A DNA stretch of 42,366 bases, from assembly GCA_900088475.1 (NCBI GenBank), contig FLMG01000818.1, positions 1 through 42,366 of the forward strand, in the 5' to 3' direction. Under the pieces are notes generated by a model. That model searched no databases, was not told where the DNA came from, and saw only the letters and a program-made list of their open reading frames with translations. Origin of the DNA: Hyphochytrium catenoides. Lineage: Eukaryota > Protista > Hyphochytriomycota. Position numbers and translations under genes: made by a program. Of the stretch, positions 9,675 through 42,366 are shown in pieces (position 1 is the stretch's first letter; the number at the start of each line of letters is the position of its first letter).

Positions 9675-11468
9675 ATGCGGTTACCACGCTTCTTCTCCGC
9701 GTCTCTCCTTCCTACACTTCTTCTCCCCATTCTTTTCCCTTCTTCCTGTGTAGTCTCCTCTTCATTGCCCTACCTAAGGAAAGTCTCCTCTTCAGTGCCC
9801 TATCTAAGGAGAGACGAAGAGAGTAACTCTTCTGTTCCCTCTCCCTCTGACAATGAGTTTGTCAGTGTGTCTGGCAGGCACTTCTCTCTCTCCTCCGGTG
9901 CGCCTTTCCTGTTTGCAGGGACTAACAATTACTATGTCGCCTTTAGCCCTAAGAGAATGACCGATGATCTCTTTGACAAGGCAAGATCTATGGGGATCAC
10001 GGTAGTGAGAAGCTGGGCCTTCAGCGCCATTGGGAGCCCGAACACTGACTCTCCGCCGACTGTCAACCCTAAGGATAAAGCCGTATACTTCCAATACTGG
10101 GATAAGCAGAAGGGAGAGAGCGCTGTCAACGAAGGAGAGAATGGAATAAAAAGACTGGACTACGCGGTAAAGGCAGCAAAAGACAGAGGCATCCGTCTTA
10201 TCCTTGTGCTTACGAACAACTGGGCGGACTTTGGTGGGCTGGAGCAGTATAATCTATGGCTGAACCTCAAGCCGCGAGNNNNNNNNNNNNNNNNNNNNNN
10301 NNNNNNNNNNNNNNNNNNNNNNNNNNNNNNNNNNNNNNNNNNNNNNNNNNNNNNNNNNNNNNNNNNNNNNNNNNNNNNNNNNNNNNNNNNNNNNNNNNNN
10401 NNNNNNNNNNNNNNNNNNNNNNNNNNNNNNNNNNNNNNNNNNNNNNNNNNNNNNNNNNNNNNNNNNNNNNNNNNNNNNNNNNNNNNNNNNNNNNNNNNNN
10501 NNNNNNNNNNNNNNNNNNNNNNNNNNNNNNNNNNNNNNNNNNNNNNNNNNNNNNNNNAGGCAGCGAGAGACAGAGGCATCCGTCTTATCCTCGCGCTTAC
10601 GAACAACTGGGCGGACTTTGGTGGGCTGGAGCAGTATAATCTATGGCTGAACCTCAAGCCGCGAGAGGCATTCTACAAGGACGAGAGAGCGAAGCGAGAG
10701 TACAAGCGATGGCTCTCTTATCTTGTCAACCGGATCAATCCTCTGACGGGCGTAGCTTACAAGGATGAGCCTGCCATTATGGCTTGGGAACTAATCAACG
10801 AGCCACGCTGCAAGGGCTGTGGAGACTCTTCTGGCGGCTGCCCACAATGTCCTTCCTGCTCTGCCTCCTCCCCCAGCTGCTCTACGGACACCATCACGCG
10901 CTGGGTAGACGAGATGTCTACCTACCTTCGCTCTCTAGACAGCAACCACCTGATCGCCGTAGGAGACGAGGGCTTTCTCCGTACAAGCAGGCCAGAGTAC
11001 GGCTATGACGGGACAGAAGGAGACCACGAATCACTGGTCAAACTGGCTAACATTGACTTTGCGACGGTGCATTGTTACCCTGAACACTGGGGCAAGGACG
11101 CGCAATGGGGCCCGGTGTGGGTGAGAGAACACGCAGAGATTGCTAAGAGGTATGGCAAGCCATTCATTATAGAGGAGTTTAACTGGCACGCGGAACAGAA
11201 AGACAATCCGATGGGAAAGGAAGAGAAGAGAAACGCTTTTCTGGACTCGATGGTGCGGACGGTGGATGAGCAGAGAGGGTACTGGGCCTTCTGGATGCTT
11301 TCTGCGGGCAGAGCAGACAGAGATGAAGGCCCATTGCAGGGCTTGTACCCAGATTATGACGGCTTCACAATCTACTGGCAGGACCAGGGTGGACAGGTGA
11401 CGCCTTCGGGACAGAAGATGAGAGAGCGAGCGGAGGGAAGCAAGAAACTGCAGCAGGGATGGACGTGA
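9675..11468 (+). CDS. Secreted GH5 endo-1,4-beta-mannanase-like enzyme (subfamily GH5_7-like), copy 1; about 468 aa once the gap artefact is removed
   Basis: Hydrophobic signal peptide; motifs FLFAGTNNYY, VVRSWAF, LILxLTNNWADFGG, AWELINEPRC (acid/base Glu), VGDEGF, HCYPEHW, IIEEF (nucleophile Glu) and YPDYDGFTIY. No introns are needed. Confidence 0.92.
   Translation: MRLPRFFSASLLPTLLLPILFPSSCVVSSSLPYLRKVSSSVPYLRRDEESNSSVPSPSDNEFVSVSGRHFSLSSGAPFLFAGTNNYYVAFSPKRMTDDLFDKARSMGITVVRSWAFSAIGSPNTDSPPTVNPKDKAVYFQYWDKQKGESAVNEGENGIKRLDYAVKAAKDRGIRLILVLTNNWADFGGLEQYNLWLNLKPRXXXXXXXXXXXXXXXXXXXXXXXXXXXXXXXXXXXXXXXXXXXXXXXXXXXXXXXXXXXXXXXXXXXXXXXXXXXXXXXXXXXXXXXXXXXXXXAARDRGIRLILALTNNWADFGGLEQYNLWLNLKPREAFYKDERAKREYKRWLSYLVNRINPLTGVAYKDEPAIMAWELINEPRCKGCGDSSGGCPQCPSCSASSPSCSTDTITRWVDEMSTYLRSLDSNHLIAVGDEGFLRTSRPEYGYDGTEGDHESLVKLANIDFATVHCYPEHWGKDAQWGPVWVREHAEIAKRYGKPFIIEEFNWHAEQKDNPMGKEEKRNAFLDSMVRTVDEQRGYWAFWMLSAGRADRDEGPLQGLYPDYDGFTIYWQDQGGQVTPSGQKMRERAEGSKKLQQGWT
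9752..9810 (+). repeat. 30-nt tandem duplication encoding VSSSLPYLRK / VSSSVPYLRR after the signal peptide
   Basis: agtctcctcttcattgccctacctaagga versus agtctcctcttcagtgccctatctaagga. Confidence 0.9.
10279..10557. other. Assembly gap (279 N) flanked by a 108-nt overlap
   Basis: 10171-10278 and 10558-10665 are the same sequence with 4 substitutions. Confidence 0.97.
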
Positions 11469-14617: not shown

Positions 14618-15919
14618 ATGAAGCTTCATTTGTGTCTCTCCCTCCTCCTCCCTCTCTCTTCTCTTTTGGTGCAGCCCTCACTCTCTTCTTCCGAAAGCAG
14701 CTTCGTGACTGTCTCTGGTCAAAAGTTCCTCGTCGATGGCAAGCCTTTCCTCTTCGCAGGCACCAACAACTACTATATAACGAACAGGAACAAGAGAATG
14801 ACTGATGATCTGATGAGCAAGGCAAAATCTATGGGCATCACTGTCATCAGAAGCTGGGCATTCAACGCTGTCGGACACCCTACCAAGGACTCTCCTCCAT
14901 CCGTGAACCCTGAAGCGTGGCGTGACTATACGTACTATCAATACTGGGACGCGGAGAAGGGAGAGAGTGTGGTCAATGAAGGAGAGAACGGCCTTCAAAG
15001 GCTGGACTATGCAGTGAAAGCTGCAAAGGATAGAGGCATCAGGCTCATTCTTGCTTTGACCAACAACTGGCAGGCTTATGGAGGTCTGGACCAGTACGTT
15101 CTATGGCTTGGACTGCCAAACAGAGATGCTTTCTACACCGACCGCCGCGCCATCGCAGAGTTCAAAAAGTGGATGAACTACCTGGCAAACAGAGTTAACA
15201 CTTTCACGGGAGTGGCTTACAAGGATGAGCCTGCTATTATGGCCTGGGAGCTTATGAATGAGCCGCGCTGCAAGGGCTGCGCGGACTATGGCAGCTGCGG
15301 GAACTGCCCCAAGTGCCGCACCTCCAGCTCGAGCTGCACGATAGATACGATGACCAAATGGGTGGATGAAGTCTCTCTATACGCACAGCAGGTGTTCCCT
15401 AAGCAGCTCATCGCTGTGGGGAATGAAGGATTCCTGAAGACAGATAAGCAGGAATACGCCTATGACGGCTCAGAGGGCGACAATGAGGCGCTGATCAAGC
15501 TTCCGGGGATAGATTTCTCCACTGTCCACTGCTATATTGAGCAGTGGGGCAAGCAGCCCAGCTGGGCCGCTGGCTGGATCAGAGATCATCTGAAGCTCTC
15601 AGCGAAGTATGCGAAGCCCACACTGTTTGAGGAGTTCGGGCTGACGGAGTACGGGGATGTTATGGCGCAGGAAGAGAAGAGGAACGCCTTCCTTGATGAG
15701 TTTATTGGAGAGGTGAACAAGGGCAAAGGTTATTGGGCCTTCTGGATGCTCTCGGCAGGAGAGACCTACGCCGATCAGGGCCCTATCACCTCTCTCTATC
15801 CAAATTATGACGGCTACACTGTCTACTATCAAGATGCCAACGGGCGAGTGACGCCTTCGGGGCTGCAAATGGCAAGAAGAGTGAACCAGACAGTGCAGGC
15901 GCAGATGACATCTTGGTAG
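14618..15919 (+). CDS. Secreted GH5 endo-1,4-beta-mannanase-like enzyme (GH5_7-like), copy 2, 433 aa, intronless
   Basis: Signal peptide MKLHLCLSLLLPLSSLLVQPSLS; motifs FLFAGTNNYY, LTNNWQAYGG, AWELMNEPRC, LFEEFG and YPNYDGYTVY. Colinear paralog of 9675-11468. Confidence 0.94.
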   Translation: MKLHLCLSLLLPLSSLLVQPSLSSSESSFVTVSGQKFLVDGKPFLFAGTNNYYITNRNKRMTDDLMSKAKSMGITVIRSWAFNAVGHPTKDSPPSVNPEAWRDYTYYQYWDAEKGESVVNEGENGLQRLDYAVKAAKDRGIRLILALTNNWQAYGGLDQYVLWLGLPNRDAFYTDRRAIAEFKKWMNYLANRVNTFTGVAYKDEPAIMAWELMNEPRCKGCADYGSCGNCPKCRTSSSSCTIDTMTKWVDEVSLYAQQVFPKQLIAVGNEGFLKTDKQEYAYDGSEGDNEALIKLPGIDFSTVHCYIEQWGKQPSWAAGWIRDHLKLSAKYAKPTLFEEFGLTEYGDVMAQEEKRNAFLDEFIGEVNKGKGYWAFWMLSAGETYADQGPITSLYPNYDGYTVYYQDANGRVTPSGLQMARRVNQTVQAQMTSW

Positions 15920-19318: not shown

Positions 19319-21540
19319 ATGGTTCGCCGCACTGGCCTCGCCCTCACCAGCATTGTCGCTGCTGCTCTTCTTCTCGGCGCTTCTGCCTTCGACGATGAAG
19401 TTGCCACGACGGTCTTATCGGCACCTTCCTACTGGCAACCGTCCTCAGAGTTCGTGACCGGCATCTCGCTCGATGTCGCAGGGACCAGCCAGTCTGACTG
19501 TGCGTCCAAGTTTGCGAAGGAGAAAGTTCAAGCTATTGCCACTGCCGCCGGCGTACCTGCATCTGATGTGCAGAAGACCTCCGAGTACCGCGATCAGCAC
19601 AATGGACTGCTGCACGCCACGTTTAGGCAAGTAGTCAACGGCGTCCCAGTGGAAAATGGTCACATCAAGGTCGCTGTAGATAAGGATAACCGGGTTGTGG
19701 CTTGGTCCAGCACCATGAAGGACACCGCAAGAGCTACCACAGCTGGAGACAGCCTTACTGACACTCAGCTCACCGCTGTTGAGGCCCTTCAGTCCTTCGC
19801 TAGGGCTGCCAACCTTCCCTTCAACGCTGAAGCTGTGCAGGCCACCCCTGGAGACAACGTTGTAGATGATGTTCCTCTTGACTGGAAGATCTCTGGCGTT
19901 GAGTTTGCTCTTGGTGATGTGCCAGTGAACATGAAGTACTATGTGACCGCCCAGGGCGTGCCCAAGCTGTCCTGGAGCATGGAAGTAGAGATGCTGAACA
20001 GCTGGTAAGGGAAAAACCGCATCCTCTTTCTGTCTGTTATGCCCCAGATACTCCTTCTTTAGTCTTTCCCCACAGTTTGCTCCCTTCTCTTTCCCCAGTG
20101 TGTTCCTTCCCTCTGCCCTTGCCAGCCGCAGTGTGGTGAGATAATTCAGCCCACTAACTGTGTCTTTTCTTCAGGCTTAATGTCTTTGTAGATGCAGAGT
20201 CTGGAGAGATCCTTGGTTTCTCTGACTGGTCATCCAACACTGAGGCCCCTCGCTTCACTGAAGAGGGCACCACAAGCGGCAGCATGATCCTTGAATACCC
20301 TGCCAAGAAGGATTCTCGCCGCCACCTCTCCACGCAGCAGATTCTCGAGGCGTCTCTGGGAGAGCAAGTCCCAGCAAGAACTCTCCGCCGAGCCCAGGCT
20401 GGTGTCAAGAACGTGAACTACCGGGTGCTTCCTGTGGGCATCAACGACCCTGAAGATGGACCATTCTCTCTTCTTACAGACCCACAGGACCCCAAGTTCT
20501 CTCCTCTGGGCTGGCATGATGCTGGCCGGGGCCCTAGCCCCAGCACTAAGGGAAACAACGTTGTGGCTACAGCTAACAACTATGCCCCAGTGGCAGACAA
20601 CTATAACTTTGACTATGTCTTTGATGCTACTAAGGAGCCTACCACGTACCGCAACCTGTCCGTGACCAACATGTTCTACATGTCCAACATGATTCACGAC
20701 ATCTACTACGCCTACGGGTTTACGCCCGCAGCTGGCAACTTCCAGACCACGAACGCTGGCGAGGGTGGTGCAGGAAACGATGCTGTGGTGGCAAACTGCC
20801 AGGACAGAAGCGGAACGAACAACGCTAACTTCGCTACTCCTCCTGATGGCCGTGCTCCGACCATGAGAATGTACCTGTGGGACAGGACACAGCCAGGCCG
20901 CGATGGGGCTCTAGAGAACGACATTGTCATCCACGAGTATACTCACGGGCTTTCCAACCGTCTCACAGGCGGGCCTTCTAACTCCAACTGCCTCTCAGGC
21001 CAGCAACCCGGCGGTATGGGTGAGGGCTGGTCTGATTTCTATGGCAACTCCTTCAGAATCAAGCCTACTGACAGCAGAGAAACGGACTTTGCCCTGGGTG
21101 TCTACGTGTTGAAGAACAAGGCAGGAATCAGAAAGTTCCCGTACTCCACCAACATGCAGACCAACCCTCTCACCTTCTCTCGGCTGGCCACCAACGACTA
21201 CCGCCCAGTCCACTCTGCTGGCACTGTCTGGAACACCATTCTGAACGAGGTATACTGGAACTTGGTGGATGAGCTTGGCTTCACCGCAGACATCAAGAAC
21301 GATGCCCAGAGTGGCAAGGGCAACACTCTCATGATGCAGCTGGTTATGGATGGAATGAAGCTTCAGCCGTGCAATCCTACCTTCATCAACGCCAGAGACG
21401 CCATTATCCAGGCGGAGAAGGTGCTTACCGGCGGAAAGTATGCTTGCCTGCTTTGGAAGGGCTTTGCCAAGCGTGGGCTGGGAGTTTCGGCCACCTCTAG
21501 CTTCAAGGATGGCTTCGATGTCCCTGCAGACTGCCAGTAA
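19319..21540 (+). CDS. Secreted M36 metalloprotease (fungalysin) preproenzyme, 683 aa; exons 19319-20004 and 20175-21540
   Basis: Signal peptide; FTP-like propeptide (HATFRQVVNGVPVENG); intron TG|GTAAGG ... CTAAC (20154) ... TTCAG|G restores W-LNVFVDAESGEIL. The catalytic domain has GFTPAAGNFQ, NNANFATPPDG, HEYTHGLSNRLTGG (HExxH), GGMGEGWSD and QPCNPTFINARDAI. Confidence 0.95.
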
Positions 21541-22637: not shown

Positions 22638-23378
22638 TTAGAATGCAGCTCGTAAAAGAGCCACAGCACAGAGAAGAGTCATAGATAAAGTAATAATGAA
22701 TGTGCTGCTTGTAAGCTCTGCGCGGCCAAGACCCATCGCCGATGACTTGTCACAGGCGAGGTTGCTCTGCAACATGGCCACGTACTTGACTGCGTTCTTA
22801 TAATCTTGTTGATCACCAGGAAGGCAGTGCGCTTGACACTTAGGCAACAGCTCCAATGCCTGCTTCATCACCGGCTTTACCTGCGCAGAGCCAGCGCAGA
22901 GGCATTGGGCAAACTCAGGAAAAACTTGCTTCACTTGCGACGCGAAGAATTCTGATCCTATAATGAACTCCATGAACTCCGGCTGATGGAACTCAGGAGG
23001 AAGAAGTGCCTGCCCATCTGAGCTTTTCAGAGACATACAGATTGGAGCCGCAGCCATGCTCTCCTTCGCCTTCGTTATATTCCACCCCTGGCTAAAGAGA
23101 CATAAGGCACACAAGGCAGAGTCATCGTCCAAGACAGAACCCTGCACTCTCTCGGGCGAGGAGGAGGGAGAAGCGGCCTGTGTGTAGATGTCCGCCACCC
23201 ACGAGAGAGCCACGTCGCTGCTGCTATTGTCGCGGTTGAGAGAAGAGGGACCAGCAGAAGGAGGAAGCGCAGCTCCTCCTTTCTCAGCGCTGCTCGCAAA
23301 AGTTGCCGCCAGTAATAAGAAGGCCGCCCATACTAGCAAGAAGTAGGGCAGAAAACTCAGCCGAACTTCCTTCTTCAT
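22638..23378 (-). CDS. Uncharacterised 8-Cys protein with signal peptide and GPI-anchor-like tail, paralog A (246 aa from ATG 23378)
   Basis: Non-repetitive ORF with an N-terminal hydrophobic stretch, Ser-rich linker, Cys domain, small-residue site SSA and a hydrophobic C-terminus. It aligns with 25680-26423. A probable 5'-UTR intron spans 23505-23416. Confidence 0.85.
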   Translation of the reverse strand: MKKEVRLSFLPYFLLVWAAFLLLAATFASSAEKGGAALPPSAGPSSLNRDNSSSDVALSWVADIYTQAASPSSSPERVQGSVLDDDSALCALCLFSQGWNITKAKESMAAAPICMSLKSSDGQALLPPEFHQPEFMEFIIGSEFFASQVKQVFPEFAQCLCAGSAQVKPVMKQALELLPKCQAHCLPGDQQDYKNAVKYVAMLQSNLACDKSSAMGLGRAELTSSTFIITLSMTLLCAVALLRAAF

Positions 23379-25679
23379 AGTTTCGCTGGCGTCTCCCACT
23401 TGTTTTGCTTGTTACCTGCGGAGATGGCCAAGAGAAAAGAAGTGACAAAGTGCGACGCTAAGCCCTCCTAGAGAAAATCCGTGAGACTGAAATTGAATGG
23501 CTTACCATGGAAGTGTGCCAGCTAAAAGCTTCAGATACCTGCTCTGCTTATGCTGGTACCGTCCGACGGTTATTTGGCTTTTACAAAGCAGCATCCTCTC
23601 TCTCTCCTCTCTCTCTCTCTGTCTCTCTCTTCCATATTTCGCTCTTCTCTCTCTGTTCCTTGACCACCTGCTGGCTCTCCTTCGTTTTGTTCTGTCTCCA
23701 TTACTTGCCCTCTTCTCCATCTTTGAGTTTCTCTCCTAACTCTCTCTCTCTTCCATGTATCTTCTTCTTTCCTTCTCCCTCCTCTATGCATTGTACTGCC
23801 ACAGGAGCCAGCCGCGAACAAGGTTGGTGATGATGCAGTCTCTTGGCTTCTCGTTTTCCCACCCTGCTTCTGATGCTCCAACTCCACCAGCACAGCAGAA
23901 TGTGTGACTGCACTCATTAGATATTGGCTTTAAGGCAGAAGGTGAGGAAGAGAAGAGGAAGAGGGGAAGACCAGACAACAGGATTGGACAACGGAACGTC
24001 GTCCAAAGCTGCACCTTGGCTCTCTCTCTGTCCACCAGCAACAAGCAGAGATGCTGCTCCTGCGTATGATTGAAGGCGCAGACTGGTCAGGGAGGAGGAG
24101 GAGGAGGAGGCTTGCTGCTGCTGGCCTGCCTGGGGTAAGTACAACTCCTCCCGTCTTCCTCCTTCCCTTCCCTTTCTCCTCCTCTTCTCTCTTCTTCTTC
24201 TTTCCGACCTCTTCTGCTGCTGCTGTTCTCCTTCTTCTGTCTCTGCTGAGAGAAAGAGCCCAGACCCTGCTTTGGCCCTGCTGCCTCACGTCCAATATTG
24301 CACCCTCACAAGTGGGCCAATACTGTATAATGTTTTTGATCTGTTTAGAAAGAAAGGTGAATTGTCGTAACCAACTGTACAGTCCATCTTACACGTACAG
24401 GCCTACGCTTGTCGCCGTGATAATACTGCAGTACCAACCTTCCTCCTTGACCCCCCTCTGTGATGAAGATGACCTGTACTATGTACCCTAGTCGAGGGGG
24501 ATCACAGTAAGTTTAGTACTGTTTGTAAAGGCTTCTTCTTCTTCCCATCATCTGACAGACTGATGACAGATGATGATGATTGAGTGAATGATGATGGTGA
24601 TTGACTAGGAGAGGAGACAATGGACCAAGGCCCATCGTCACTACTACCGTCACTGCCGCCGGCGGCCATCATGACAGAAGAAGACCCGTTGCGGCTGAGC
24701 TGCTGCTGTTCGTTCTTTTATGTTGACTGAGAGAGCGCGGGGGGGCTGGTACTCTTGCTGCTGCTACTACTCGCTGTAACTACTACCTACCTTGCTTCTT
24801 CTTCCTGCTGTTGCTGCTGCTGCTGACTCCTATTTGCTGTTCTGATGATGAGTTTGCTCGCCCGTATTTATCAGCTGTAGTTCCTCTTCTGACGCAGATC
24901 ACTCTTCAATATCATTACTACCATACCACTCGTTTGGCGGCGACGGGACCAGGATGATGATGAAGAGCTAAGCTAAGCTTCAATTCCAGGGCCTCATTCT
25001 CACCCTCTCTCCTCCTCATGACCACCATATACCCTCTCCTCCCTAGTCATTCTGCCCTCCCTTCCTCTCCTCTTTCGCCCGCTAAGATCTCTGGCTGCGC
25101 TGCTCATTTATTATTGTTTACGCCGGACAGGCAGCACTCTACACACAGCAGCCATGTTCCTTTCAATTCCTTTTTTATGTCAGCAGCAGGCTTCTCTTGA
25201 CCATTGCCGATGATCGTGCTCCTACGAGGCTGTATGGTATGACCCTCCTACCTACCGCTGAATGCCTAACTATCAGCAGTAAACTGTAGCACTACTATTA
25301 TAAAAGATAATTACGCGGCTTCCTGCAACTACTCTCCTCCTCCTCCCGAGACTGCCACGCACAGAGTCGTTGCCACTCAGATGACTCCTGACTGTCTGCG
25401 GAGGCTGATGGGAACAGATGAACAACGCGACGGACCAGGCAGCTCCATCCCTCCGATATGAAAGTTCACGCCAGGGATCAAATTTTCAATATTATCATCC
25501 CGTATTTTCATTGCATCTAGAGTATTCTGTAAGCGTAAAGTAAGGCCTCGTGCCGTCCTGAAGATGCAGTTTCTAGCTACATGCTGGTGGCTAATGAAAT
25601 ACTACCTAGCAAACGCGTAGTAGAAGAAGGCCATAATTGGGCCTCCATTGAATGGCGATCCAAATAGGCCACTGTCTTT

Positions 25680-26423
25680 TCAGCGAAGGAAGAACCGCCA
25701 ACAAGTTGAGAGTGTGAAGAAGGCTGTCGCAAACATGCCAACAATCGGGGTAGTATGATAGGCCAACGGAGCCGCGGAATCAGATGCAGCAAGGTTCTTG
25801 CACTTTAGATTAGCTTGGGCTTGGGTTGTGAGTTGAGGACTTATGTTTCCCAGATTCGCTTGATCCACAAGGGAGCAATCCTCCTTGCATTTTGGCAAGA
25901 TATCCCGTATGTCTTCATTTAGTCTCTGGCTCTCTACAAGGAGGACACACGCGCACTCAACAAACTCTGGATAGTCCCTCCGCACTTGTTTGGCATAGGA
26001 TGTGGACGTCAGAATGTCCGAAATGAAGCCCTGCAAATCGTATCTGGCCTTGGTAGGGACCTGAGAAGGGCTTCGAAGAGCTCTGCAGGCTGGATCAGAG
26101 GCTACTTTCACTTGGGTGGATTCTATTTCCAATCCACTTCCCATGAGACAGCGATTGCAGGATGGGCTTATCCCCACCAAATCCGCCGATGGAGAGGAAG
26201 CCAGGACTGTCACTTCGTCGCCAGATGTTGGTGGAGAATCTTTTGACAAGGGAGAGAGTAGAACGAGCATTGAGAGCCCGTCAACGTCGTCTGAAGACCC
26301 AAGAGCAGCGGCTCCTCCCACTGCATAGGCGCCCAGAATGGCTATAAGGAAAAGCATTGAGGTGGTGGCTGCTGCGTGTTTCAAAAATAGCGCCATGTTT
26401 CTCGAAAAAGGAAGAGCCATCAT
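25680..26423 (-). CDS. Uncharacterised 8-Cys protein with signal peptide and GPI-anchor-like tail, paralog B (247 aa; start may be Met10)
   Basis: Same architecture as paralog A. Shared motifs are CxxCL, PxC, AxQVx3PEFxxCxC, LPKCxxxC, DQ and QxNLxC; the tail is DSAAP...IVGMFATAFFTLS. Confidence 0.85.
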   Translation of the reverse strand: MMALPFSRNMALFLKHAAATTSMLFLIAILGAYAVGGAAALGSSDDVDGLSMLVLLSPLSKDSPPTSGDEVTVLASSPSADLVGISPSCNRCLMGSGLEIESTQVKVASDPACRALRSPSQVPTKARYDLQGFISDILTSTSYAKQVRRDYPEFVECACVLLVESQRLNEDIRDILPKCKEDCSLVDQANLGNISPQLTTQAQANLKCKNLAASDSAAPLAYHTTPIVGMFATAFFTLSTCWRFFLR

Positions 26424-29400
26424 GCTTTCACGAATGCTTCACAAGATACCCCGTAATGGGAACGTTAGTGGCGCTTAACTTAGGCGATGTACACAAGAGA
26501 AACTAAAGGTGCCGACGACAGAGTCCGTACTATGAAGAACGGCGGACGCGGACGAGTAGTTTATGTTCTAGGGTGGAAAAAAAAGGTGGCAAGAAGAGCT
26601 CGGCTTCCAGGGTTTGCCTTCGAGGATAAAAGCAATACAGAAAGTGAAGTCTCCCAGCTCGCTTCTCGGAGCCTCCTTATCCTGCAGCACAACCTCGCTC
26701 TGCATACATTGGCTTTGTTTGGTGTCTGGGACTGATGACGGGGTGCCGGCGGTCCTGTTCCGCTGCTCACCTCGTCTCATTTCTTCCCCCTTGTCGTCTT
26801 CCTCTCCTCTCTTTCACCGTTCCCTGTCTTCTTCCGTTTGAAAGCACTCCACTCTCCCTATTATTATTATGTTGGATTGGTTGCATCCCTACTTCTTCTT
26901 CTTCGTTGATACATATACACTGCTACTAGTCGTCGACAGGACGTGCTGAGGAGATAGTGCGGTAGCTTGACCTCTTGGGTGGCCAAGGGAGGGGAAGGGG
27001 CCCTCGTCTCACCAAGGATAACTGGTGGGTGTCCTCTTACTTTTTTGGTCGTCCGCCGTCCCAGAGGGGCCATCATCATCATCATTCTATTGACCAACGA
27101 TGATCTTCAGGAAGTCTGGCCCGAGATAGATGTGATGAGGGTGTTTCTTCCTCATCAGACAAAGGGGCCATTATTGCTGCACCACCCCTTGGAAAAGTAG
27201 TTCTACACTCTCTATTGCCTGAAAAAGCCTGGTCCTCTTCTCTCGTTTATTCTTTGGGTTGTTTGTTGTCCTACCGTACCTGGGAAGGCATTGCAAGCCT
27301 AAGGACGTGGTCTGATCTTTTGTCTCCACCACAAATAGTCGTCCGTTGTTCCCAGAGAATTACATAAATCTTTCTAACAAGCAAAAGAAGGGCATAACAA
27401 CCGAAGATGACACTCAGTGCTTTGCCTAATAATGCATTCGCTAGTATTTCTTACATTATTGTGAATACGAGTGAAGTGAGGCGAAAGCGTCCTTTAAAAG
27501 TCGTCAAAAGGCCATCCCTCTCTGGCTATGAGACGGGGGCCACTCGGAATGGGACATTATCATACAAACCCACACTGGGAGGAGGACGGGGAAATCGCTA
27601 CGTCTACAATTATCTTCTGAAGGGTTATTAGTTAGGCGGTGATGACAGGAATAGAGGGAATAGAGGAAAAGAAGAGGTGGTGTGGAAACAGAGGGACACT
27701 AAGTTGATGTGGGGAGGGGGAAGAGGGAGGAAGAAAGATGGACAGCAGCAGGGCTTGAGGAGAACCGTCGTACCTCCTCCTCGCAACAACGGCTGTTGAA
27801 TGAAGAGATGGCGAGGCAAGGTTGAGGCGCAGAAAGAGGTGAAGCGATTTATTACTCGTAAAAGAGAGAGGGAAAGTGATCTTGGACGGCCTCTCTCTTC
27901 TCTCTCTCTCCCCTCTTCTTTCCCTCTCTCTTTCTCTTTCGCTCTCGCGCTCTCTCTCCCGCGCTCTCCTCTCTCTTTCTCTCGCTCTCTCTCCCAAGCT
28001 CTCCTCAGCCCAGTCCCGTCCTCTCTGTTACCTTCCAGTATCGTCACTGATGTTTCTTTCATTCTTCTTCTGGTCATCTTCATTCTACTCTGTTGAGCCG
28101 TGGTATCGGGAATGACCGGATGAGAAAAGCAAAGAAAAAATAGGGAATGCAAGAGTATTGGCAGGACCAGAAAAGACACAACAAGTCCATCCTCCTTTTC
28201 TTACGCTCAGCCGCTGCAGAGAGCACGGTCTATGCGTCACAGCATCAACTCTCAACGTCTGCTTTGCCTTTTTTCTTTCAGAAGAGAAGAAGTTACATAA
28301 TAGAGAAGTAGAGGGGAGAAGAAAAGATTGTAAGAACTGGTGAGGGAGAGAGAGAGGGAGGGAATGAAGAAGGATGATGGAAAGAAAATAGAGAAGTAAA
28401 GGGAAAAGAAATCATTGTAAGGAGGAGTGAAACAGAGGAGGAGAGAGGAAGAAGGATGTAAAAACTGAAGATTACAAAGACAGATGAATAATGGAGGCAG
28501 ATAGACAGAGACAGAGTGCGGAAAGTAGATACAGAGGTGAGAGAGGTAGTTTCATATAATCGTACAAAGAACATGATAAGTGTTATACGTAGTGAAAGAA
28601 ATCTTAAAGCACCAAAGAAGAGGGAAGTTGAGCAAGGGTCAGTCGCCGGCTTTGGCTGTCTAGCGGCCGCTATTTAGCCGGACAAACGCCGCTGAGGAAG
28701 ACCTACTATGCGAAGGTGATGCTACGGAGTTCTCGGCTAAGTCGAAGTTTAGTGTCAGAGCACCTCCTTGTGCATAAACAGACAGGCCTATGGGGCAGAC
28801 AACGACGGGGAACGGAGAAGATGAAGTGGGACATAGCTGCTCTCAATTCTAGTTCTATTGCTTCTCTCCCTCTTTCGCTCACTGCTCCTCCCTGAGGTCG
28901 GTTTGCTTTTGCTAACAATGCCAATCAGTCAATAAAGATTGATCTAAGAGAAAAGTCCTTAGAACCGGCTTCAAAGTCTTCCTCTGCGAAGCTTGGTCGG
29001 AGCTGAGGCCTGGCCAGCCGAAGCGAAGACTTAGCTAAACACCTTACTCACTCTTTTATTCTTGTGTCTTGTACACTTGTGTCTTGTACATTTGTTCTTC
29101 GCGACTCCCTGAAGGCGGTGGGCAGCGGGCGTTGGGGTAAACACAAAAGGAACCACTTGTCGATCTCTGGGATGAGCCCTTCTCATTCCTGGTTTCAATA
29201 ATGAGTGGAGCCTGCTCATGATAGCACCTTCTTTTTCTTCTTCCTTTTCGGAACCTGATGGCGAGGGTGGCGGTGGAGAACGCGTTGTGGAGTCCAGAAG
29301 TCTGTAGCTCTCGTCTCCTCTTCTATTCCCTTCCTTTCCTTCCTTCTTCCTCCTTCTTCCTCTTCTTCTTTTTGATCCTTCAACTTCTTAGTAGTTTTTT

Positions 29401-33188: not shown

Positions 33189-34607
33189 GGAATCGGCGGT
33201 CCAAAGCGCTTGTTAAGAACAGACTCACCGGATATCAGCAGCGACTGTCTGGAGGGAGAACAGAAAGAGGAAGAAGACTTTAGTCTCTCTCTCGTTCTCT
33301 CTCCCTATCTCTGGCTTATTTCTGGGGCTATTGCGATGGCTCTAGGAACAGTGAGCGCCTTCAGATTAACAGGAGGAAAGGTGATCAGGGATCTTTGGGG
33401 CCGCTCTCACCCTCTCTGGGTGATCCTTTGTCGGCAGTACACGGTCATGGCCCTTCTCTCTTCTCTCGTGGAGGCTTTGCAGGAGAAGGGGGAGAGGGCG
33501 AGATTGAGGACAGAGAGAGAGCGTTAAGAAAGAGAGAAGGAGACGAAGAAAGAAGAAAGAAGGGAAAGAAAAGGGAGAAGGGGGAAGAGAGAGAGAGAAG
33601 AGACAGAAGAGGAGGAAGAAGAAGAACCAGAAGAGGAAACAAAGCTGCCACAGACCCCTTCTCGGCCTTCTCCTTTTCCCAGCACGGCCGCCAACTCTCT
33701 TCCCATCTCTTCCTCGTTACTCTTTCCCGCACACTTCATCTTCCTCTCTCTTTCTCCCATTAGCGGAGAGAAAGACAGGAGAAAAAGAGGAAGAAGAGAG
33801 AAAGGAGGACGAGAGAATGGAGGACGAGAGAAAGGAGGAAGAGCACCAAAAGGGAGATATTCAAGAGAGAGAGAGAGAAAGGGTTCGTCCTCCAGCTCCT
33901 CCATATTTCCCTTTCCAAGAGAGAGAAGAAAGAAAAGGAGAGAGGAAGAAAACATTGAAGAGGAGAGAGAGAAGAAAGCTTCCTGAAGAGCTAGTGCTGG
34001 CCTTTGAAGAAGAAGCAACGACAGAGTTTCTCTCTCAAGAAAGACAAAGAAGGAAGAGGGAAGAGAGACGAAGAAGGAGAGAAGGGGTCGGGGCCGGACG
34101 AAGAGAGAAGAAAGACTCTCTTTCTGCTCCTCCTCTACCGTCTCCCTCCTCCGCAGCAGCCTCCCGTGTAGGCTTTGTCTGGCGCCTCAAAAGAGAAGGA
34201 GGAGAGGCTCTTCCCTACGAGTTCTTCTTCTCCCGCCACGCAAATGAGCTGACTGCTTATCCTCAGCGGCGGGCGAGGGAGCAGGAAGAAGAAAGAAGAA
34301 GAAGAAGAAGAGGCTGGAGAGAAGAGAGAGAAAGAGAAGAAGAGATTTGAGAGAAAGAGAACGAAGAAGAGAAGAGACAGGATGGCGGTTTCTATAGGAA
34401 GGTTGAACCAAACGGAGCTCCGTTCATGGTAAGGCACGAACGGAGCGAGAGAGACAGAGAGAAAAACAGACAGAGAGAACGGAAACGGCAGACAAGGACA
34501 GAAGACAGGGAGAGAGAGAGATCAGAGACGGGAAAGACAGGGGAAGAGGAGGAAGATAGAAGATAGAGAGAGTGAGAGTGAGAGACAGAGAAAAAAGAAA
34601 GAAAGAA

Positions 34608-37409: not shown

Positions 37410-37940
37410 TTAACAAAAGTAGCATCTTATTGATCTGCAACCCTTTTTCACGGCATCTCTAATTATAACAGCATTCCGAAGTGATGCTTGGGAGTCTAGC
37501 GTGGCTCTCTGGCACCTATTTCCCGTTCGACCGCAAACTGTTGAGGCTTTGCAGGTGGCATCCGTAGCATAATACTTTCTGCTGGTAACTCGATGGCAAA
37601 AGTCATTGCTGCATGCTTCGGTACGATATTGGAGTTGACGAAGCTTTGGATTGTGCACCTCTTCACCGATCCCCTCGTTCTCGTTGTCGCCTAGCCCATA
37701 GCCTTCAACTTCCTGTTGGCCCTGCTCCTCTTCCTCCTCAGCCATCACAATGTTGGACAGGGACCTCCCACTAAAAGCGGCTTCAACGCGTTGTCCGGCT
37801 TCCGCGTAGATGGGACCAGCGCTAGGACTGCCATCGTCACTTACAGTCGCAGGGACCACTACTATTGACTCGCCAAAAGCGAATTGAATGGAGTGGGATG
37901 CGAGGAATAAAAGGAATGCTGTGGCTACTGAGATCATCAT
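37410..37940 (-). CDS. Small secreted protein (176 aa): signal peptide, acidic pro-region, cationic 8-Cys C-terminal domain
   Basis: Intronless non-repetitive ORF. Signal MMISVATAFLLFLASHSIQFAFG; RSLS at aa 59-62; EEEEE at aa 68-72; RQLQ at aa 101-104; Cys at 110, 115, 130, 136, 143, 168, 173 and 176. Confidence 0.8.
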   Translation of the reverse strand: MMISVATAFLLFLASHSIQFAFGESIVVVPATVSDDGSPSAGPIYAEAGQRVEAAFSGRSLSNIVMAEEEEEQGQQEVEGYGLGDNENEGIGEEVHNPKLRQLQYRTEACSNDFCHRVTSRKYYATDATCKASTVCGRTGNRCQRATLDSQASLRNAVIIRDAVKKGCRSIRCYFC

Positions 37941-40187: not shown

Positions 40188-40702
40188 AATATTTTTCATA
40201 AAAACTGCGTCTTCTGAGCAGGTGGATTAGAGTGAGACAGGGTACTCCCTCCCACCATCATTTGCACTTTGTTAAATTCAAGACCTTTTCCTCCGTGCTG
40301 TTCTACTCAAAAGTTGAAGAAGAATAGTCGTGGGAAGAGACGGGAAAAGGGATAAAAGTGTGCGTCTAGATGGAGAAAGAAGAGACCGCGGACAGAAGAC
40401 GTGCAGATCTTGGTCAACATCATCACACGGAAGGACACACCATAGGATGTATCCCTTCTTCTTATATGGCTGAAAAAGAAAAAAGAGTCATGGAAAGAGA
40501 CGGAAAAAGGGATAGAAGTGCGGGTCTAGAATGGAGAAGAAAAGACGGCGGACAAACGACCTGCAGGTCGTGGCTCTCATCAGCACAGTGGAGGACGCAG
40601 GATGATAGTTCTATCCTTCTTCTTTTATAACTGAAAACGAAAAAGAGTTGTTGGGGAGAGACGGAAAAAGCGATAGAAGTGCGGGTCTAGAATGGAGAAA
40701 AA

Positions 40703-41265
40703 ACTGCCTCCCATGCACCTTCACTGCCCTCACCTCGGTCAGCTAGTGACCCTTCCTCCGTCGAGGACTCCTCTACCCAAGCAAAGGGTCCGACGCGCTT
40801 CCAAACTGGCTGAAGATGGCTTGTTTGCAAAAGCTGTTGCTGCCCTAGTATCAGATGGCATTGCCACTCCCTCGGAGGAAACTCTCTCTATCCTCCTCCG
40901 GGCCAAGCACCCCGTGGGTGCCGCCATTCCTTCCCCTGTTAATCCTCTCTCCCCCGCCGCTTTCTTACCTCTTCACGATGACGCTTTCTCTCCCTCTTCA
41001 ATCACCGCTAGGCTTTCTTCCTTCCCTCCTGGCTCCGCCGCTGGCGCCAGTCAGCTGCGGCCTCAGCATCTGAAAGACCTCTGTCTCTTCACACCTTCTC
41101 CCGGCGTTCGCGAAGCCCTTTGCCTTTCTCTGTCAGCATTGACATCGCTCCTGGCCCAGGGCCTTGCACCCCCGGATATTTCTCCCTTTCTCGCTGGTGC
41201 TCCACTGTTTGGTTTGACTAAGAAGGATGGCGGCCTTCGCCCCATCGCCGTTGGCGAAACTCTAA
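40703..41265 (+). mobile_element. Truncated non-LTR retrotransposon reverse-transcriptase fragment (CRE/SLACS-like clade)
   Basis: GSAAGASQLRPQHLKD ... FLAGAPLFGLTKKDGGLRPIAVGETL matches the pre-RT and RT domain 0-2 motifs of early-branching RLE-type non-LTR elements. Similarity stops abruptly after GETL, and there is no YxDD. Confidence 0.82.
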
Positions 41266-42366
41266 CGGTATTGTTGACCTCTGCTTGGGTTAGGAGCGCC
41301 GAACGATCGTATCACTTCGTTACCCAAGCAAAATTGGACATACTCTTTCCTAGCTCAAGATCACAAACGAATTTTAGTGGGGCAGAGGTTGGGCAGCAAA
41401 TATTGACCCAACTTCAACAGATACAATCGAAGATTGTCCAAGATACACCTCAGGACAAGGGGCTGGAGGAGCGGCCAAGCTTGACTCATCTTCTTAGGCT
41501 CCATCATGGGTGGACTGCTTGGAGGTCCACGACCGACATGATAGAGGTTGTTCCCGACAGCAATAGAGCTGAAGAAGAGAGAGACAGGGGACAAATATTA
41601 GGTAGGGACAACAAGGGCACTCATCAAATGTAGCAGCTACCTGAAGGTGTTGTGAGAGCGAACGTCTCGCCGAACCCTAGTACAACGTAGCAGTAGTAGG
41701 AGCCGTCGCGGTGCTGAACTTATTGGCAGCACCATCTCTTGAAGATCTGTGGCTGAAAGCATTCTGTCCTCCACCTCTCCTCGTCTTCGATCCCCCTCTC
41801 CTCTGTTGTGGGAAAGCTCTCATCCATAGACTCAGAGGGAGCTTATGCACTAAGCTGCGATACTGTACCCTAATAAGATGGTTCAACTGGTGTCTCGTCT
41901 CACAAACAACAGAGACGGGCCAGTCATGTTCCCACGGAAGTCCTCTTAGACTGTCCAAGAGAGCAGAGACCGAATGACGCCCACATGGAACTGTCGTAAC
42001 CGCAAGGAACGAGTTCCCTTGGAACAAGGACTTAGGGTTACGACCATACTTTAGGGGAAGGAGGGGTTCCTTACATTTGGTAGGAAACGAGGGATGTTGA
42101 TGACTGAGCTCCATCATCCCCCATCTTATGCGGAAGGAGTATGCCTCAGCTCGTGATATGCAAGATAAGAAACTATACCGGTACCAGGAGAGAGCAAGAT
42201 GATACGTCATTCACTTCCTCAAAAACGGTCATGCAGGCTCAGCATTCGGCAATTAGATGGTGTGCGTCGTAGGGAGGGTTATAAGAGGTAAAGAAGAGAA
42301 GATTGATGGTGGTGGGTGAAAACAGGTACATAGAACTATAGTAGAAAGAAGACCAAAGATAGCAGT

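Follow-up and report, generated by a model that had tools for sequence, protein, structure and literature searches.

An orphan family of putative GPI-type surface proteins with an eight-cysteine helical domain in the hyphochytrid Hyphochytrium catenoides

Two paralogous genes and their family in the genome

We analysed contig FLMG01000818.1 of Hyphochytrium catenoides (assembly GCA_900088475.1), whose 42,366 nucleotides are all included and are called here the window, and focus on two minus-strand genes, P1 and P2, encoding Cys-rich proteins. P1 (22638..23378, minus strand) is a single exon of 246 amino acids (aa) with its stop codon at 22638-22640. The open reading frame (ORF) as listed extends from 22638 to 23399, where it opens with a GTG (253 aa); the first in-frame ATG, at 23378, is the eukaryotic start and gives the 246-aa protein. 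P2 (25680..26423, minus strand) is also a single exon and encodes 247 aa from the ATG at 26423. Both ORFs were thus recovered as proposed in an earlier interpretation made from the letters alone (hereafter the sequence-only reading), which had announced two minus-strand proteins of ~246 aa. The genes are arranged head to tail on either side of a 2.3-kb, GA/CT-rich, low-complexity spacer (23379..25679). BLASTP aligns their products with 28% identity across 126 aa (E 2e-15). This likeness is far past chance and, as judged from the alignment, P1 and P2 are paralogues.

In P1, residues ~1-30 form a signal-peptide-like N-terminus (23289..23378, minus strand), with hydrophobic 15-mers from residues 7-17, a maximum Kyte-Doolittle (KD) value of 2.48 and a helix predicted by AlphaFold2 (AF2) at residues 10-27. 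The 8-Cys helical domain (22752..23111, minus strand) carries Cys 90, 93, 114, 159, 161, 181, 185 and 209. It is followed by a C-terminal tail resembling a glycosylphosphatidylinositol (GPI) signal (22641..22745, minus strand), composed of the small residues SSAMG, a polar spacer and a terminal hydrophobic stretch (15-mers 224-232, maximum KD 2.53), with 5 residues between the stretch and the protein end. The signal-peptide-like N-terminus of P2 (26304..26423, minus strand, residues ~1-40) has a long n-region and hydrophobic 15-mers from residues 16-28 (maximum KD 2.15). Its 8-Cys helical domain (25800..26159, minus strand) carries Cys 89, 92, 113, 157, 159, 179, 183 and 208, and its GPI-signal-like tail (25683..25793, minus strand) consists of the small residues ASDSAA, a spacer and a hydrophobic end of ~20 residues. 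The P2 tail is weakly hydrophobic, a single 15-mer passing the threshold (KD 1.71).

The whole 61.0-Mb, 4759-contig assembly, in which the window is contig C3246, was searched in six frames with P2 and then with a family profile. Exactly five copies were found genome-wide: P1 and P2 (profile match E 1e-87 and 1e-86, respectively), C1360:1334-2020 (minus strand), C2435:1343-2023 (minus strand) and one on contig C2184. All five are unbroken ORFs of 226-300 aa. The profile search detected no third copy in the P1-P2 spacer or elsewhere on the contig. The entire 6.7 kb of C2435 is collinear with the start of C1360 at ~91% DNA identity (C1360:1-6721 versus C2435:1-6700), and the family is therefore counted as four or five loci. 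From this comparison, the two contigs would be haplotypes that have diverged, or else a family member would have been copied within a recent segmental duplication. The single nucleotide polymorphism frequency reported for the H. catenoides assembly is roughly 2.75%, and the divergence between C1360 and C2435 is well over this figure. The tandem pair described in the sequence-only reading is hence real, but it is only part of a family of four or five loci.

Outside the C1360/C2435 pair, the domains are 26-37% identical to each other. Cys spacing in the five copies follows C-x2-C-x20/21-C-x43-52-C-x-C-x19-C-x3-C-x22-24-C, and all eight Cys are invariant. The other residues of the domain that are invariant in the five-way alignment are L, G, P, P, S, A, P, F, P and Q. 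All elements of the conserved frame initially recognised in P1 and P2 were found (CxxCL, PxC, AxQV, PEFxxCxC, LPKCxxxC, DQ and QxNLxC), but the gap from QV to PEF is of four residues and not three. No polar residue of catalytic type is invariant among the five aligned copies, which makes a non-enzymatic binding module the most likely nature of the domain.

All copies present the same order: a signal-like segment, a linker, the 8-Cys domain of 120-128 aa, small residues and a terminal hydrophobic tail. The linker has ~45-65 residues. S, T, P, G and A account for 54-57% of it in P1 and P2, for 54-61% when all copies but that of C2184 are considered, and for 30% in the C2184 copy. In this last one, a long Ser-rich stalk separates the domain from the tail. 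We also observed a partly conserved [A/G]-L-S-[W/M] motif at ~23172-23222 of P1 (minus strand, residues 53-69) and in the matching region of the paralogues. It is located ~25-35 residues past the signal peptide, in a short, low-confidence predicted helix of the otherwise disordered linker, and may act as a pro-region or in sorting.

Three features bear on membrane attachment. A hydrophobic N-terminal segment compatible with a signal peptide is present in 5/5 copies, as read from hydropathy only. The C-terminal layout of a GPI signal, in a heuristic reading, is also found in 5/5 copies: small residues, a short polar spacer and a hydrophobic stretch of 15-21 residues ending 0-5 residues before the stop, with the small-residue run 8-12 residues upstream of the stretch. 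Finally, the genome encodes a GPI transamidase subunit, PIG-T/Gpi16, at C3882 (E 6.6e-105, above the curated cut-off). The signal peptide, Ser-rich linker and GPI-like tail suggested previously therefore look as described when judged by hydropathy and composition, and these features make GPI anchoring likely. In a published study of H. catenoides (PMC5795050), GPI proteins are not mentioned. Alternatively, the hydrophobic C-terminal stretch could serve as a transmembrane anchor or simply be retained, and the products would be type I membrane proteins or soluble secreted proteins. The heuristic nature of the GPI reading and the weak hydrophobicity of the P2 tail go in this direction, but the classical layout of the signal in 5/5 copies, with 0-5 residues after the stretch, and the transamidase subunit encoded in the genome make this alternative unlikely.

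The ratio of nonsynonymous to synonymous substitution rates (dN/dS) was measurable in one pair, C1360/C2435, all others being saturated at synonymous sites. It amounts to 0.44 for the full coding sequence, 0.20 for the signal peptide and linker and 0.45 for the domain; the value of 1.56 obtained for the tail concerns 27 codons, too short for interpretation. There is thus evidence of constraint, and positive selection or rapid diversification was not seen. Since synonymous sites are saturated, low identity is compatible with old duplications. The view that the domain is 'diversifying quickly' is not supported by these data: the sole measurable pair gives 0.44-0.45 and, in the other pairs, low identity may mean age. 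A role as variant surface antigen, another suggestion of the sequence-only reading, is unlikely, given that the family counts four or five loci and that this protist is probably saprotrophic.

P1, P2 and their relatives could also be chance ORFs or dead genes that are not expressed. Their GC content at third codon positions (GC3), 0.50-0.57, is under that of the neighbouring glycoside hydrolase family 5 (GH5) and M36 protease genes (0.65-0.66). However, all five ORFs (226-300 aa) are intact, their ends are conserved, the Cys frame does not vary and dN/dS is < 1, which leaves almost no room for this explanation. A real secreted family is very probable.

Predicted fold and search for relatives

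The P2 domain was modelled by AF2 from the 5-sequence alignment. The model has a predicted local distance difference test score (pLDDT) of 90.4, a predicted TM-score (pTM) of 0.79, eight helices and no strands. In the 129-aa construct, helices span residues 5-13, 18-27, 29-32, 42-46, 48-57, 59-68, 70-97 and 103-124, the last two being long. The full-length P1 model shows the same helices, eight-plus, over residues ~85-210. Block pLDDT in this part is mostly 73-90, a single block being at 66, and the linker and tail are disordered. Of the amphipathic-helical, disulfide-bonded domain postulated at the outset, the helical fold is thus predicted with high confidence.

The two models were compared with known and predicted structures. 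Foldseek against the PDB gave a best E of 0.2, nothing above noise, and the same was true of Foldseek against BFVD and of VIA-align (wide and second-look). Saposins are not among the fold matches listed. The CFEM fold is a helical basket, as in Csa2, and no CFEM chain appears in the Foldseek or VIA rows listed. The weak rows that recur correspond to globin-like proteins, to Mp1p and to an invertase inhibitor, all under the noise level stated for helical models. A globin-like fold, which would call for a significant structural match together with a conserved haem-ligating His, was rejected.

The invertase inhibitor rows deserve comment. Tobacco invertase inhibitor chains 1rj1 and 2cj8 are among the weak Foldseek rows (E 1.7), and P1 and P2 lie in a cluster with secreted hydrolases (two GH5 and one M36). 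The proteins might then inhibit secreted hydrolases, either as a helical bundle resembling pectin methylesterase inhibitors (PMEI) and invertase inhibitors or as a guard for the neighbouring M36 protease. TM-scores of 0.27-0.30 and E > 1 are however noise, and the Cys pattern differs. In addition, the neighbourhoods of the other family loci provide no functional clue and have no adjoining hydrolase genes. We consider an inhibitor role highly improbable.

Sequence searches were equally negative. Pfam searches with full-length proteins and with domains, up to E 10, returned chance rows only, e.g. Synaptonemal_3 at 0.009 in 2/5 members, and a PDB sequence profile search returned two chance rows (E 0.4-0.6). 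No match was obtained in a word-indexed search of 5.8 billion protein clusters, with P2 or with the 5-sequence alignment. A domain profile (A2) searched against 1.84 billion representatives of ~15 billion proteins detected no relative; its single match (E 1e-4), a 711-aa repeat protein aligned over a 20-residue stretch (profile positions 60-79), was rejected as spurious. Scanning of JGI metagenome contigs gave 79 pattern matches, 0 confirmed, and two ESM Atlas queries gave no usable match. Exact-sequence look-ups of P1 and P2 returned no record. The collections searched, from which records of this genome appear to be missing, hold neither the family members themselves nor another hyphochytrid genome, and 'orphan' is used here to mean that no relative was found beyond this lineage. 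With no relative in Pfam, PDB, protein databases, metagenomes or the Atlas, including by profile search, the proposal that the family is undescribed is supported by sequence comparison within the limits of the databases searched.

Comparison with known families and possible function

By Cys pattern, the nearest family is CFEM, and the likeness read from the sequences is a resemblance, not membership. The CFEM consensus is PxC[A/G]x2Cx8-12Cx1-3[x/T]Dx2-5CxCx9-14Cx3-4Cx15-16C, over ~60 aa (PMC8867779). Like CFEM domains (e.g. Candida Csa2/Rbt5), the domain studied here has eight Cys whose motif types succeed each other as C..C, C, CxC, Cx3C, C. CFEM proteins are likewise helical, as a rule extracellular and in many cases GPI-anchored, with regions rich in S/T. 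In contrast, only the CxC and Cx3C spacings agree with the consensus, the domain is of ~120 aa instead of ~60 aa and the conserved Asp is not identifiable. By profile (PF05730), 0/5 members match at E <= 10. A genome-wide CFEM search gave only an unrelated 25-residue stretch (E 0.1) and missed the family loci.

It can nevertheless be imagined that the family is related to fungal CFEM but has strongly diverged and expanded, and that it serves in haem or iron capture; it might have come from fungi, as did other H. catenoides genes. The common order of Cys motif types (PMC8867779), the typical GPI anchoring of CFEM proteins and the fungal-type M36 protease gene that adjoins P1 and P2 would agree with such an origin. 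Against it, the successive spacers differ (2 versus 3, 20-21 versus 8-12, 43-52 versus about 4-9, 19 versus 9-14 and 22-24 versus 15-16, for the family and CFEM, respectively) and the domain is twice the CFEM length. With, in addition, no Pfam CFEM match at E 10, family loci missed by the genome-wide search and no CFEM structure among the fold rows listed, CFEM ancestry appears very unlikely.

The initial statement that the Cys spacing fits neither elicitins nor saposins was upheld: both families fail on profile, on Cys number or pattern and on fold. The elicitin profile PF00964 matches neither the proteins (Pfam, E <= 10) nor any other part of the genome, and no elicitins are reported for H. 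catenoides (PMC5795050). Elicitins and GPI-anchored elicitin-like proteins of the sister lineage are likewise small, secreted or GPI-anchored, disulfide-rich and helical. They differ by their 6 Cys (three disulfides), ~98 aa and a beta-hairpin, whereas the present domain has 8 Cys, with CxxC, CxC and Cx3C, in 120-128 aa and no strand. Saposins share with it the nature of a small, disulfide-stapled, helical, lipid-interacting domain, but have 6 Cys in ~80 aa with another pattern; saposin-like membership was rejected, with no Pfam match and no saposin among the fold matches listed.

Plant LTPG proteins have the same architecture of signal peptide, 8-Cys helical domain and GPI signal, and a CxC motif. 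However, their CC doublet does not exist here, the spacing is different and the present domain is longer. Membership in the plant nsLTP/LTPG family was rejected, as the adjacent CC of C...C...CC...CxC...C...C is absent in all members and neither Pfam nor the fold searches gave a match. Mp1p of Talaromyces marneffei (PDB 3L1N, 5ECF, 5CSD), which is repeated among the weak structural rows for both models, is a GPI-anchored wall protein with helical-bundle ligand-binding domains and an S/T-rich region. The SRS domain, searched genome-wide, is absent.

The interpretation that we favour, with moderate confidence, is that of a lineage-restricted family of secreted, GPI-anchored surface proteins in which one compact helical 8-Cys domain constitutes a non-enzymatic binding module. 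P1 and P2 would be real, intronless, anciently duplicated genes of this family with four or five loci. The N-terminal signal peptide would permit entry into the secretory pathway. A disordered Ser/Thr/Pro-rich segment would precede a single compact, all-helical domain of ~120 aa, in which the eight invariant Cys presumably form four locking disulfides. A GPI anchor would replace the C-terminal signal, and the domain would remain at the surface of the plasma membrane or of the cell wall. There, it might hold a small hydrophobic ligand of the lipid, sterol or haem type. This last step, our preferred guess, is tentative and was made because of the analogy with GPI-anchored carriers, namely CFEM, LTPG, elicitin-like proteins and Mp1p. 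These carry haem, lipids, sterols and fatty acids, respectively.

About equally likely is a structural or adhesive role, in which the proteins would belong to the cell wall or to the surface coat of zoospores or cysts, with no small-ligand carrier function. Wall-linked proteins of walled osmotrophs typically have GPI-type tails and S/T-rich segments, the invariant residues are not of catalytic type and, in the C2184 copy, a long Ser-rich stalk lies between domain and tail. On the other hand, nothing specific points to a wall component: Pfam revealed no repeats and no lectin or adhesin domains. Moreover, in 4/5 copies the domain is at ~10-15 residues from the putative omega site, which would leave it buried near the membrane and not displayed.

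Several points weigh against a GPI-anchored family that binds hydrophobic ligands. The functional guess comes from analogy. H. catenoides reportedly keeps CYP51, is azole-sensitive and makes its own sterols (PMC5795050), and one motive for a sterol scavenger is therefore gone. The signal peptide and GPI signal were assessed by hydropathy and composition only. With 5 aligned sequences, AF2 scores for helical bundles can come out too high, and neither the Mp1p nor the globin-like rows reach the noise level for helical models. Lastly, hyphochytrids are an isolated and under-sampled lineage; orphan status is therefore partly expected and partly reflects their sampling.

In a bolder version, the domain would be a new disulfide-stapled helical fold private to hyphochytrids, serving as a GPI-tethered carrier of a hydrophobic ligand. 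By analogy with the carriers above this is conceivable, though rather doubtful. If true, a Cys-rich helical carrier tethered by GPI would have been invented independently once more, in a lineage of walled osmotrophs that lacks elicitins; the same solution is known from fungi (CFEM), plants (LTPG) and oomycetes (elicitin-like proteins).

The family is new within a familiar class, that of Cys-rich GPI-type surface proteins, and comes from a lineage that has been little sampled. Its value is moderate, Cys-rich surface orphans being expected in a phylogenetically isolated protist. If expressed, the genes define an unnamed family with a confidently predicted helical domain unmatched in Pfam, PDB and ~15 billion predicted proteins. 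They would represent a cell-surface family of a hyphochytrid, the only one sequenced in this sister group of the oomycetes, and add to the surface proteins evolved independently by walled osmotrophic eukaryotes. The domain (120 aa, four presumed disulfides) is a tractable target for structure determination and ligand screening.

Neighbouring genes and sequence context

The P1/P2 region is a cluster of secreted-protein genes. Two paralogous GH5 genes, both intronless and with a signal peptide, are located on the plus strand at 9675-11468 and 14618-15919. The first is broken by an assembly gap (a run of N) duplicating flanking sequence, and its length of 597 aa is probably an artefact of this gap. 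Between the second GH5 gene and P1 lies a fungalysin gene (19319-21540, plus strand), with an FTP propeptide at 19319-20008 (PF07504) and an M36 catalytic part at 20284-21540 (PF02128, E 3e-152). A GT...AG intron of roughly 170 bp lies between its two ORFs, which were scanned as separate exons and not joined. Fungalysin is a fungal-type secreted protease, here in a stramenopile-like genome.

On the other side, a small secreted-looking protein of 176 aa is encoded at 37410-37940 (minus strand). Its middle is acidic and its cationic C-terminal part contains 8 Cys, with a spacing unrelated to that of the P1/P2 family; the protein has no Pfam match. A reverse-transcriptase-like ORF of 313 aa (40692-41633, plus strand), with the motif …LRPIAVGETL… and no Pfam match, is probably a fragment of a non-LTR retroelement. 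Long GA/CT-rich low-complexity tracts, e.g. at 401-883, 23570-24300, 27628-28179 and 33500-34350, occupy the intergenic regions. On both strands, these generate many spurious ORFs rich in RE/SL repeats. The window also shows strand-specific GC and AT skews that switch from one part to another.

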